In this document: in pieces, positions 765 through 3,384 of the stretch
Layout of the letters: every line of letters begins with the position of its first letter
Numbering within the stretch: the first letter of the stretch is position 1
Source of the DNA: Macrostomum lignano
Lineage: Eukaryota
Assembly (NCBI GenBank): GCA_002269645.1
Contig: NIVC01004024.1
Coordinates: forward strand, 1 to 63,967
Length of the DNA stretch: 63,967 nucleotides
Direction of reading: 5' to 3'
Made by a program: the position numbers and the translations under genes
The notes under the pieces: model-generated
The model's database searches: none
What the model saw: only the letters and a program-made list of their open reading frames with translations
Told to the model about the DNA's origin: nothing

Positions 765-3384
765 GCAAGTGTCTCAGGTCGGGGTTGAAGCCGTTCACTG
801 CTCGAGAATTCAATTCTTCCGCGACGTCGTCGTTGCGGACGCTGACTATGGACAGGCGTTCGAGGCTGCGGCGGCGGGTGGTGAGGAACTGAAGCCTGCT
901 GAACTGCCTCTGCCAGTGAAATTCTAAGCGTAGAAAGCCAGCCAGACAGACAGACAGACAGTCAGACAGGCAGTCAGACAGACAGAAAGACAGACAGACA
1001 GACAGACAGACAGACAGACAGACAGGCAGACAGACAGACAGACAGACAGACAGACAGACAGACAGACAGGCAGGCAGACAGGTAGACAGACAGACAGACA
1101 GACAGTCAGACAGACAGACAGACAGACAGACAGACAGGCAGACAGACAGACAGACAGACAGACAGGCAGTCAGACAGACAGACAGACAGACAGACAGGCA
1201 GTCAGACAGACAGACAGACAGTCAGACAGGCAGTCAGACAGACAGACAGACAGACAGACAGACAGGCAGACAGACAGACAGACAGACAGACAGACAGGCA
1301 GACAGGTAGACAGACAGACAGACAGACAGGCACAGGTAGACAGACAGACAGACAGACAGGCACAGGTAGACAGACAGACAGACAGACAGACAGACAGACA
1401 GACAGACAGACAGACAGACAGGCAGACAGACAGACAGACAGACAGACAGGCAGACAGACAGGCAGTCAGACAGACAGACAGACAGACAGGCAGTCAGACA
1501 GACAGACAGACAGTCAGACAGGCAGTCAGACAGACAGACAGACAGACAGGCAGACAGACAGACAGACAGACAGACAGACAGACAGACAGACAGGCAGACA
1601 GGTAGACAGACAGACAGACAGACAGGCACAGGTAGACAGACAGACAGACAGACAGGCACAGGTAGACAGACAGACAGACAGGCAGACAGACAGACAGACA
1701 GACAGACAGACAGACAGGCAGACAGACAGACAGACAGGCAGTCAGACAGACAGACAGACAGACAGACAGGCAGTCAGACAGACAGACAGACAGACAGACA
1801 GACAGACAGGCAGACAGGTAGACAGACAGACAGACAGACAGGCACAGGTAGACAGACAGACAGACAGACAGACAGACAGACAGACAGACAGGCAGACAGA
1901 CAGACAGACAGGCAGTCAGACAGACAGACAGACAGACAGACAGGCAGTCAGACAGACAGACAGACAGACAGACAGACAGACAGGCAGACAGGTAGACAGA
2001 CAGACAGACAGACAGGCACAGGTAGACAGACAGACAGACAGACAGACAGACAGACAGACAGACAGACAGACAGACAGACAGACAGACACACAGACAGACA
2101 GACAGACAGACAGGCACAGGTAGACAGACAGACAGACAGACAGACAGACAGACAGACAGACAGGCAGACAGGTAGACAGACAGACAGACAGACAGGCACA
2201 GGTAGACAGACAGACAGACAGACAGGCACAGGTAGACAGACAGACAGACAGGCAGACAGACAGACAGACAGACAGACAGACAGACAGGCAGACAGACAGA
2301 CAGACAGGCAGTCAGACAGACAGACAGACAGACAGACAGGCAGTCAGACAGACAGACAGACAGACAGACAGACAGACAGGCAGACAGGTAGACAGACAGA
2401 CAGACAGACAGGCACAGGTAGACAGACAGACAGACAGACAGACAGACAGACAGACAGACAGGCAGACAGACAGACAGACAGGCAGTCAGACAGACAGACA
2501 GACAGACAGACAGGCAGTCAGACAGACAGACAGACAGACAGACAGACAGACAGGCAGACAGGTAGACAGACAGACAGACAGACAGGCACAGGTAGACAGA
2601 CAGACAGACAGACAGACAGACAGACAGACAGACAGACAGACAGACAGACAGACAGACAGACAGACAGACAGACAGACAGACAGGCACAGGTAGACAGACA
2701 GACAGACAGACAGACAGACAGACAGACAGACAGACAGACAGACAGACAGACAGACAGACAGACAGACAGACAGACAGACAGACAGACAGACAGACAGACA
2801 GACAGACAGACAGACAGACAGGCACAGGTAGACAGACAGACAGACAGACAGACAGACAGACAGACAGACAGACAGACAGACAGACAGACAGACAGACAGA
2901 CAGACAGACAGACAGACAGACAGACAGACAGACAGACAGACAGACAGACAGACAGACAGACAGACAGACCTGATCTCCATCTCGCCGGAGTTGACATGCC
3001 GCTGGGTCACCTGTTGCCTCAGTCTGATTGCTCCGTTTTGGCAGTCGTCGCCGTGCAGCAGAAACGGGTGCGGCTCCAGCTCGGAGTGACGGTGCAGCCG
3101 CGTACGCAGACGGAGTGCAGTTCCTCCGAGATGCCCGCCACCTTCAGCCGGGTGTAGCTCTCGCCCTGCGGTCCAGAGTGCCGGCCTTTCAGGATACCCC
3201 CAAGTCGATTGTCCGTGACGTCTTTTTTGTAGCGGAACTGGTGGAACTCGGCCGGCTGAATAGCTATGCTCAGCGTCGGGGGCTGCAGCAGTGGCTGAGG
3301 AGGAAGGCCAGCCTGTATCATGATCTGTTCCAGAAGATCATTCCCATTTGCTGCTGCTTGATTTGGCTCTTGCGGATTATCCAT
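765..3384 (-). CDS. Rel homology domain (NF-kB/Rel-like) protein, 5' part; the 3' exons presumably lie beyond the left edge of the window; one apparent 1-nt frameshift
   Basis: Exon 1 runs 3384-2970: MDNPQEP...[18 protein letters not shown]...GGILKG...YTRLKV...VRGCTVTP. After restoring one G near 3082 it reads [21 protein letters not shown]...EMEIS. The intron is GT(2969)..AG(866). Exon 2 (865-765) reads [33 protein letters not shown] and is followed by a GTGAGT donor. These blocks are colinear with RelA motifs IIEQPKQRGMRFRY / PHPHELVGKDCRDG / [29 protein letters not shown]. Confidence 0.7.
945..2969. repeat. (GACA)n tetranucleotide microsatellite with GGCA/GGTA/GTCA variants, filling intron 1 of the Rel-like gene
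   Basis: Directly visible; it produces the spurious SVCL/TDRQ ORFs. Confidence 0.98.

Follow-up and report, generated by a model that had tools for sequence, protein, structure and literature searches.

Divergent RHD genes have already been published for planarians: Schmidtea mediterranea carries seven of them, together with a conserved NFAT5 (PMC13563047). A 2018 review reports expression of NF-kB in the planarian intestine (PMC6043800), and only p50/p105 has been reported as absent from Platyhelminthes (PMC11432056). Given these reports, the view that flatworms lack RHD factors – a premise of a first-pass annotation of the DNA studied here – is out of date. Leger et al. 2022 do not discuss flatworms. 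For Macrostomum, a literature search on the genus and NF-kB returned nothing relevant and no study of the Rel-like family of M. lignano, and a full-text search with the gene identifiers Mlig026896 and Mlig010152 returned no papers.

Here we describe part of one such gene, found in a 63,967 bp stretch of DNA (the window). The minus strand of positions 765 to 3384 holds exons 1 and 2 of BOX15_Mlig026896, a seven-exon Rel-homology gene of Macrostomum lignano, with an apparent frameshift that is almost certainly an under-call of the assembly. The gene is already catalogued: the unexplored point is only its unusual DNA-reading loop.

Results

Gene structure and identity

The first-pass annotation proposed that three RHD blocks become colinear once a single G is restored and a GACA-rich intron is removed, and every element of that arrangement is in place on the minus strand (Table 1). 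Translation begins at the ATG at 3384-3382 (a second in-frame ATG lies at 3405), exon 1 ends at 2970 with the donor ATCAG/GTCTGT, the acceptor of intron 1 reads ccgccgcag/CCTCG and the donor of exon 2 reads CACTTGC/GTGAGT. With one base restored, the frame-corrected product of the two exons is 172 aa long and is identical at 168 of 168 positions to the M. lignano protein PAA86227.1 (BOX15_Mlig026896g2) and to UniProt A0A1I8HMB4. The UniProt entry is already named "RHD domain-containing protein"; a gene thought to be hidden, and easily missed by annotation, thus stands in GenBank and UniProt alike. Identity at the level of the protein and of the DNA of assembly Mlig_3_7 also bears out the suspicion that the host is a flatworm. 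A calpain match of no more than 52% identity had raised the idea of a species other than M. lignano, which the identity to Mlig_3_7 DNA led us to drop.

Table 1. Features of the Mlig026896 locus in the window and their counterparts in the Mlig_3_7 locus (L001).
Feature	Position	Strand	Remarks
Intron 2, first 764 nt (898 nt in Mlig_3_7)	1..764	-	Colinear with L001 12611-13376
Exon 2, 101 nt	765..865	-	34 residues, the third RHD block; equals L001 12510-12610
Intron 1, 2,104 nt	866..2969	-	GT...AG, phase 2; almost all (GTCT)n = (GACA)n microsatellite
CAGA/GACA tetranucleotide array	939..2969	.	About 501 copies, 88% matches (Tandem Repeats Finder)
Exon 1, Rel-homology gene Mlig026896	2970..3384	-	N-terminal tail, recognition loop and first half of the RHD N-terminal domain
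Exon 1 counterpart in the Mlig_3_7 locus	L001 9992-10407		Corresponds to 2970..3384 of the window; product identical to PAA86227.1 and A0A1I8HMB4 after one-base correction
Apparent frameshift site	3083..3084	+	GG here, GGG in Mlig_3_7 and in the homeologous locus
26-bp minisatellite	3487..4006	-	Directly 5' of the gene; 17 CCAAT motifs, each on the coding strand of the gene

The annotation of Mlig_3_7 is a genome-guided transcriptome (PMC5730564). The deposited, transcript-based model has seven exons, an intact exon 1 and the same junctions as the window, so that the junction proposed between 2970 and 865 and the donor at 765 are matched exactly; an exact chain of GT-AG exons on the Mlig_3_7 locus reproduces PAA86227.1. 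The locus in the window is colinear with contig NIVC01000291.1 of GCA_002269645.1. M. lignano is a neopolyploid flatworm, and the homeologue of Mlig026896 is Mlig010152. Intron 1 measures 2,102 nt in the Mlig_3_7 locus and 959 nt in the homeologue, where it is again a GTCT array; the 2-kb GACA array is no more than the content of an ordinary GT-AG intron.

Exon 3 begins at L001 13509, which places it some 130 nt past the left edge of the window. Exons 3-7, encoding the remainder of the RHD N-domain, a predicted Ig-like dimerisation domain and the tail, thus lie outside: a search of the minus strand of positions 1-764 for exon 3 or the Ig-like domain found no RHD-like frame. ARAGORN and Rfam searches over the whole window gave no matches. 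The 26-bp minisatellite could be promoter-proximal.

The apparent frameshift in exon 1

Read without correction, the frame of exon 1 meets a stop after 121 codons. The missing base had been taken to be a plus-strand G, and so it is: the deposited assembly has GGG where the window has GG. On the coding strand the restored triplet gives ACT CCC GAG (T P E), and two gene models from the earlier assembly (one of them A0A1I8HMB4) also read TPELEPHPF. A tiny intron in place of the frameshift was considered and rejected, since exon 1 runs without a break in the deposited model and the difference is exactly one base.

If the frameshift were real, then the window would represent a haplotype or duplicate copy newly pseudogenised after 121 codons, with the intact copies remaining functional. 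The window as given does lack the base, and in M. lignano DV1, where some chromosomes are present in additional copies and a large share of the sequence is duplicated (PMC5730564), a redundant copy could decay. However, the differences between the window and Mlig_3_7 have the signature of error rather than a mutational spectrum. In the unique sequence that flanks the array (1.47 kb), the comparison shows no substitutions, eight one-base indels and one 5-bp gap. Seven of the eight indels are bases that the window lacks, every one within a homopolymer run, and the indels are spread across the exon, the introns and the 5' flank. The remainder of the shared locus is nearly identical to Mlig_3_7 (two substitutions and three one-base indels in a further 5,283 unique columns), and the diverged homeologue – here the outgroup – sides with Mlig_3_7 at every alignable site, the exon-1 site included.

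Because substitutions are absent, because the differences are homopolymer indels plus a gap, and because the homeologue agrees with Mlig_3_7, we read the frameshift as almost certainly a one-base homopolymer under-call (GGG as GG) in the assembly and not a lesion of the gene; a genuine, recent loss of the reading frame is very improbable. The first-pass annotation had treated the frameshift as a property of the gene and had left room for a pseudogene. Neither idea is supported: the one-base difference is peculiar to the assembly copy in the window and stands among other one-base homopolymer differences with no substitutions, exon 1 is unbroken in the deposited model, and dN/dS against the homeologue is 0.27.

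In repeat-rich long-read assemblies, that of M. lignano among them, one-base homopolymer errors cluster beside microsatellites, where short-read polishing fails. Such errors can mimic pseudogenes, and claims of hidden or broken genes need a polished assembly together with reads.

Rel-family membership and predicted fold

The repaired and spliced product of the window scores above the curated Pfam threshold for RHD_DNA_bind (PF00554; 42 bits, the cutoff being 27, over positions 1-114 of the 169 in the profile), with an E-value of 1.2e-10 that was obtained with a provisional repair, the restored base standing about six codons from the true site. Full-length PAA86227.1 reaches 1.7e-15 (57.8 bits, profile positions 1-167 of 169). 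Scanned one by one against Pfam, the three blocks gave no RHD match, and a word-indexed homologue search with the joined product gave no matches: only an exhaustive HMMER search succeeded, and all but one of the matches of this single-sequence search were M. lignano proteins. Against the PDB, the sequence matches of the joined product were weak in their single-sequence E-values; all were Rel proteins, and they ran colinearly through the three blocks. Since the PDB matches are all Rel and the blocks are colinear, the RHD resemblance is far beyond chance.

Profile and fold searches rank the known families in the same way. Among PDB chains the family profile matches RelB, c-Rel and p65 at 1e-22 to 1e-18, p50 at 1e-14 and p52 at 1e-11 to 1e-9, while NFAT chains are matched only over a 26-residue loop region and with E-values of at least 0.0085. 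The AlphaFold model consists of two beta domains with a moderate mean pLDDT of 70.5 (62-69 in the loop region). Its best 30 Foldseek matches are all Rel/NF-kB chains covering both domains (E 1e-18 to 1e-14; the N-domain of Gambif1 at TM 0.84), and NFAT (E about 1e-12) falls below all 30. By these rankings the protein is far closer to RelA/RelB/c-Rel than to NFAT.

That the likeness arose by chance from the choice of frame and splice sites, or that the gene in fact belongs with NFAT/NFAT5, might be argued from the single blocks that fail to score in Pfam and from the weak single-sequence E-values against the PDB. Either is extremely unlikely: an independently deposited protein of the same sequence matches across the whole RHD profile, both profile and fold searches put Rel/NF-kB far above NFAT, and the loop is not of the NFAT type (R-A-H-Y-E-T-E-G). 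The original call of a divergent Rel/NF-kB-type RHD gene, distinct from NFAT, is thus upheld by the Pfam result, the PDB profile and the Foldseek rankings.

The second beta domain, residues 220-326 of the model, is encoded outside the window and matches the p65 dimerisation domain (1oy3_B, TM 0.70). Pfam RHD_dimer gave no match at E <= 1 in any family member; the alignment of the family profile with p65 and c-Rel, however, extends across the dimerisation domains of both. The prediction of a C-terminal Ig-like dimerisation domain rests on this profile-to-PDB alignment and on the moderate-confidence model.

The protein is about 388 aa long: both Rel domains, the second of them predicted, and a short tail, with the deposited CDS reaching a stop after 385 annotated residues. 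No Ank match was found in the full-length protein, and no ankyrin repeats follow to the left, the protein ending at about 388 aa. The closest ankyrin gene, some 10 kb off and on the far side of an oppositely oriented gene, is a distinct PRKG1_interact (MYPT-like) gene. Near the C-terminus, the column that holds the basic motif K-R-x-R(P) in the paralogues (a putative NLS) reads SKQQRLER in Mlig026896.

The recognition loop and selection

The Rel-like family of M. lignano comprises about ten divergent paralogue types, several of them in tandem clusters (among the paralogues are Mlig011721, Mlig000125, Mlig020664, Mlig028098, Mlig011617, Mlig033322, Mlig001933 and Mlig012767). Mlig026896 is thus one of roughly ten types, not the single retained factor that had been envisaged. 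Its loop reads ExxQxRYxKD, against the canonical RxxRxRYxCE, and carries a three-residue insertion. In the columns that we take to be R30, R33, R35, Y36, C38, E39 and R41 of p65, the equivalents of R35, Y36 and R41 are kept and the replacements are R30->E, R33->Q, C38->K and E39->D. The canonical motif R-x-x-R-x-R-Y-x-C-E is not found in Mlig026896, in agreement with the first reading of the loop as lacking the Cys and two Arg and as not being of the NFAT type either. The loop is unique within the M. lignano family, and among the aligned paralogues a Q at the R33 position occurs only in Mlig026896 and its homeologue.

The dN/dS between the homeologues (0.27 overall) is 0.24 in the N-domain and 0.19 in the C-domain: Mlig026896 is under purifying selection. 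The loop is identical in the two copies, which differ by 10% elsewhere.

These features suggest how the protein might work. Its Ig-like domain would mediate dimerisation, either as a homodimer or with paralogues, and DNA would be contacted through the L1 loop, in which the equivalents of R35, Y36 and R41 are retained. Because of R30->E, R33->Q, C38->K, E39->D and the three-residue insertion, a G-rich kB half-site should not be read in the canonical manner, giving an altered specificity, and redox regulation through a loop cysteine would be absent. Loss of the R33 equivalent could, however, have cost the protein its DNA binding altogether instead of altering its specificity.

The gene may then be functional and its protein without DNA binding of its own, which would serve in heterodimers with, or dominantly modulate, those paralogues that have the canonical RxxRxRY..E loop. 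Such a role would fit the loss of the R30, R33 and E39 equivalents (R33->Q being unique to the gene and its homeologue among the aligned paralogues), the retention of the dimerisation-domain fold, which is the most constrained part of the protein (dN/dS 0.19), and the degeneration to SKQQRLER of a basic K-R-x-R motif that the paralogues conserve near the C-terminus. Yet the loop is perfectly kept between homeologues that have diverged elsewhere, and its R35, Y36 and R41 equivalents are in place, which suggests that it still does something specific; we consider a purely non-binding partner rather unlikely.

R33->Q (which removes the guanine-contacting arginine), E39->D (which removes the loop glutamate) and the loss of the redox Cys, in a loop that is nevertheless unchanged under purifying selection, lead us to propose, tentatively, that Mlig026896 and Mlig010152 are a re-specified Rel factor. 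As such they would either read a DNA motif other than kB or serve as a regulatory partner that does not bind DNA. They would belong to a Rel-like radiation specific to Macrostomum that takes the place of canonical NF-kB signalling in flatworms. This broader reading is possible, if doubtful.

Discussion

Work on immunity and regeneration in flatworms is still seeking the transcription factors that act below TBK1 and Toll-like signalling. M. lignano, the sole flatworm in which transgenesis is routine, has a Rel-like family of about ten members whose catalogue entries say only "RHD domain-containing protein". Mlig026896 is the outlier of this family at the DNA-reading loop and hence a good choice for knock-down work and for studies of binding specificity: a modest opportunity, not a discovery.

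Compared with known systems, the predicted architecture of Mlig026896 is that of the class II Rel/Dorsal type. Like RelA/p65, c-Rel and RelB, and like Dorsal, Dif and Gambif1 of insects, it has a Rel-homology region, with two domains in the predicted model, and no C-terminal ankyrin repeats; class II proteins are its best matches by sequence profile and by fold, and share with it core motifs that include QP...RY, PHP..(L/M)xGxDC.xG, NP(F) and (R)LxFQ. It differs from them in that identity is only about 20%, the loop is ExxQxRYxKD with its insertion and has no redox cysteine, Pfam RHD_dimer goes undetected, the putative NLS is degenerate and no transactivation domain is recognisable by sequence. 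Class I NF-kB proteins (p105/p50, p100/p52, Relish) have the same RHD fold, but match more weakly (1e-14 to 1e-9, against 1e-22), and Mlig026896 has neither the ankyrin repeats nor the glycine-rich region. NFAT and NFAT5 (TonEBP) share an RHD-type fold; the loop of Mlig026896 is unlike theirs, and the profile match is confined to the loop region.

The M. lignano paralogues are 26-42% identical to Mlig026896, share its predicted two-domain layout and, without exception, also lack the loop cysteine; unlike Mlig026896 they keep H-R-F-R-Y-E-x-E, and with it the R33 and E39 equivalents, and some also keep R30. The divergent RHD genes of Schmidtea, compared here by their published description (PMC13563047), show such divergence in a flatworm order other than that of Macrostomum.

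Gene model and identity

The first-pass annotation described a divergent Rel/NF-kB-like gene on the minus strand, hidden by a missing G and a microsatellite intron; its coordinates, its strand and both splice junctions are exactly those found in the sequence (see table). Left unrepaired, the frame from the start ATG enters an unrelated frame and meets a stop after 121 codons, while the remainder of the exon 1 coding sequence is carried in a second frame up to the donor. When one unknown base is inserted after coding-strand ACTCC and the exons are joined, the product is identical at 168/168 comparable residues to two deposited M. 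lignano proteins: P0004 (GenBank PAA86227.1) and P0020 (UniProt A0A1I8HMB4, "RHD domain-containing protein"). P0004 was the best match when 1.84 billion representative proteins were searched exhaustively with HMMER (16 matches at E <= 1e-3), and shows the true reading at the repair site to be ...RGCTVTPELEPHPF... The host, rightly taken for a flatworm, is therefore the macrostomorph M. lignano, and the gene (Mlig026896), far from being hidden and unannotated, is catalogued in GenBank and UniProt with its domain named, and is intact in the polished assembly.

P0004 is encoded on GCA_002269645.1 contig NIVC01000291.1 (locus L001), which is colinear with the window. There an exact GT-AG chain of seven exons reproduces the protein, with introns of 2102, 898, 277, 84, 211 and 785 nt; the first two exons, junctions included, match those of the window. 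Because Mlig_3_7 was annotated by genome-guided transcriptome assembly (Wudarski et al. 2017; PMC5730564), the junctions should rest on RNA evidence, and the 2970/865 junction, for which a transcript check had been proposed, recurs in the deposited transcriptome-guided model. A literature search found no paper mentioning the gene. The window carries 172 of ~388 codons; nothing RHD-like was found in 1-764, because exon 3 begins ~130 nt past the left end of the window. Intron 2 holds, at ~640-720 on the minus strand, a tRNA-like stretch with a GGTTCAATTCC that resembles a T-arm; it may be a SINE or tRNA remnant, though neither ARAGORN nor Rfam calls it. The adjoining sequence near 715 is conserved at L002, the homeologous locus.

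Features located in the window (a slash within a splice site marks the exon boundary)
Feature	Position	Strand	Details
RHD gene, exon 1	3384 to 2970	minus	start ATG 3384; open frame, MDNPQEPN...; donor ATCAG/GTCTGT at 2970/2969
CAGA/GACA array	939-2969		~501 units; fills intron between exons 1 and 2 of RHD gene
RHD gene, exon 2	865 to 765	minus	101 nt; pyrimidine-rich acceptor ccgccgcag/; donor CACTTGC/GTGAGT at 765/764
26-bp minisatellite	3487-4006		directly 5' of RHD gene; 17 CCAAT motifs, 16 = AGCCAATC
IF-2-type GTPase	4600-10900	minus	immediately upstream of RHD gene
Related 26-mer array	7045-7375		contains AGCCAATCA; within neighbouring IF-2 gene
Abl-type tyrosine kinase	15168-18282	minus	F-actin-binding tail
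Second CAGA array	20144-20964		TRF
Major vault protein exon	32722-33384	plus
(CCACTCTCTCCCTCTCACCT)n block	40444-43673		3.2 kb; strongly strand-asymmetric; TRF
Ty3/gypsy-type retroelement pol	47122-50332	minus	protease, RT, RNase H, integrase; two ORFs
Calpain exon	61743-62882	minus	Peptidase_C2 + Calpain_III

Origin of the frameshift

A broken reading frame could mark a pseudogenised relic, a possibility raised earlier, or an error of assembly. Comparison with L001 bears out the missing G: at plus-strand 3081-3087 the window reads ctcGGagtg and L001 ctcGGGagtg. Over 1.47 kb of unique sequence flanking the microsatellite the two show no substitutions; apart from a single 5-bp gap, the differences are one-base indels, eight in all. 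In seven of these the window lacks the base, always within a homopolymer run, and the indels are spread over the first exon, the two introns and the 5' flank. Differences are few in another 5,283 unique columns of the shared locus: 2 substitutions and 3 one-base indels. With L002 (~10% diverged) as outgroup, every alignable site sides with L001, the shorter run being found in the window alone, and TPELEPHPF is also the reading of P0020 and P0005, two gene models of the older, ML2-based annotation. One-base deletions unaccompanied by substitutions and clustered beside a 2-kb microsatellite, where a PacBio assembly cannot be polished by short reads, are the signature of residual assembly error: on these alignments the frameshift is very probably such an error and not pseudogene decay. 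A relic is further contradicted by the gene's unbroken frame in the polished assembly, by the selection acting on it and by its many paralogues.

Relative to Mlig_3_7, one-base homopolymer deletions are concentrated around the microsatellite (window 1-3500; 7 in 1.47 kb), with almost none elsewhere in the shared locus; similar false frameshifts may affect other genes adjoining long arrays in the assembly. Several UniProt models from the older assembly (P0005, P0006, P0017) are chimeric or frame-scrambled (a fusion of the IF-2 gene with RHD exon 1; a fusion of two RHD genes; internal frame errors), indel errors of that assembly having passed into protein databases.

The homeologous locus

L002 encodes P0032 (Mlig010152g1), a protein 90% identical to the RHD gene product, and shares the neighbours of the RHD locus: an IF-2-type GTPase upstream, then an opposite-strand DUF383/384 gene, then an ankyrin/PRKG1_interact gene. 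Intron 1 of L002 (959 nt) is likewise a GTCT array. For the homeologue pair dS is 0.157, dN 0.042 and dN/dS 0.27 (RHD N-domain 0.24, C-terminal domain 0.19), and the two do not differ in or around the recognition loop. Purifying selection has acted on both copies ever since they duplicated.

Repeats and other genes in the window

Tandem repeats make up 40.5% of window 1-63967 (35 arrays, TRF score >= 200), most arrays being minisatellites of 12-61 bp. All 17 CCAAT motifs of the array directly 5' of the RHD gene lie on its coding strand; the 26-bp minisatellites are either putative NF-Y-type promoter elements or merely a repeat family. The closest database match to the calpain exon is a calpain of M. 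lignano that shares only 52% identity, though the window itself is M. lignano: this copy may be unannotated, or overlooked by word-indexed search.

Recognition loop and paralogues

The earlier description of the loop was accurate. Sequence alignments place E, Q, R, Y, K, D and R at the columns of R30, R33, R35, Y36, C38, E39 and R41 in p65 numbering, and a three-residue insertion follows the acidic residue. Among the M. lignano paralogues the prevailing loop is (R/K/E/S)-x-(H/Y)-R-F-R-Y-E-x-E, with R33 and E39 kept in most and R30 sometimes; the loop cysteine occurs in none of those aligned, and Q at the R33 position is confined to the RHD gene and its homeologue. Such changes could mean altered half-site specificity, or a non-binding partner role. 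This unique substitution pattern is the remaining point of mild interest in the gene.

M. lignano proteins account for 15/16 matches of the exhaustive search and 8/8 of a further one, and sort into some ten paralogue types, every one of them present as two or three nearly identical copies. Consecutive accessions on the same contigs outside the window (PAA90847-90851, PAA91493-91497, PAA86477-86481, PAA82369-82372) suggest that three or four Rel-like genes stand in tandem in each cluster and that the genome holds two or three copies of every cluster. Multiple RHD gene copies fit the duplicated DV1 genome (PMC5730564). The sole match outside M. lignano in the exhaustive search, P0019 (177 aa, from a 1.2-kb Logan contig), is a more canonical RHD (Pfam E 1e-35), also without the loop cysteine (RFRYASEG).

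Published work on flatworms does not all point one way. According to one report, Platyhelminthes lack p50/p105 (PMC11432056); a 2026 study of Schmidtea mediterranea describes seven highly divergent RHD transcription factors, RNAi being lethal for the most Relish-like, plus a well conserved NFAT5 (PMC13563047); and NF-kB expression in the planarian intestine was already mentioned in a 2018 review (PMC6043800). Given these reports, the idea that flatworms keep only divergent RHD factors is already published; the Macrostomum family is catalogued yet unstudied.

Placement among Rel homology proteins

Scanned singly, the three RHD blocks gave no match to Pfam RHD_DNA_bind. The joined product does (E 1.2e-10; 42 bits vs a curated threshold of 27; profile positions 1-114 of 169), and its sole matches among all PDB sequences are c-Rel, RelB and p65, the c-Rel alignment running colinear across all three blocks; this confirms the proposed three-block RHD. 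Full-length P0004 covers the whole profile (E 1.7e-15), and Pfam RHD_dimer was matched at E <= 1 by neither P0004 nor any paralogue. A family profile built from nine members and searched against PDB sequences recovered RelB, c-Rel and p65 (1e-22 to 1e-18), mosquito Gambif1 (1e-16), p50 (1e-14) and p52/p100 (1e-11 to 1e-9), with alignments to p65 and c-Rel that extend through the dimerisation domain; NFAT and NFAT5 scored 0.0085 or worse, via the loop only.

An AlphaFold2 model from an 11-sequence family alignment (mean pLDDT 70.5) comprises two beta domains (~34-214 and 220-326) and a low-confidence helical tail. In Foldseek searches of the PDB the best 30 matches are all RelA, RelB, c-Rel, p50 or p52 chains with both domains covered (E 1e-18 to 1e-14), and NFAT and TonEBP come next (~1e-12). 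The predicted N-domain alone superposes on Gambif1 (TM 0.84, 2.5 A) and the C-domain on the p65 dimerisation domain (TM 0.70). The P0004 CDS ends at its stop with no ankyrin repeats. On the Pfam, PDB-profile, AlphaFold2, Foldseek and CDS results together, the product is best classed with the Rel/Dorsal-type (class II) factors and would act as they do. It is neither NFAT nor p105/Relish: NFAT and NFAT5 are poorer profile and fold matches to the family than are the Rel proteins, and p105/Relish differ from the product in their ankyrin repeats.
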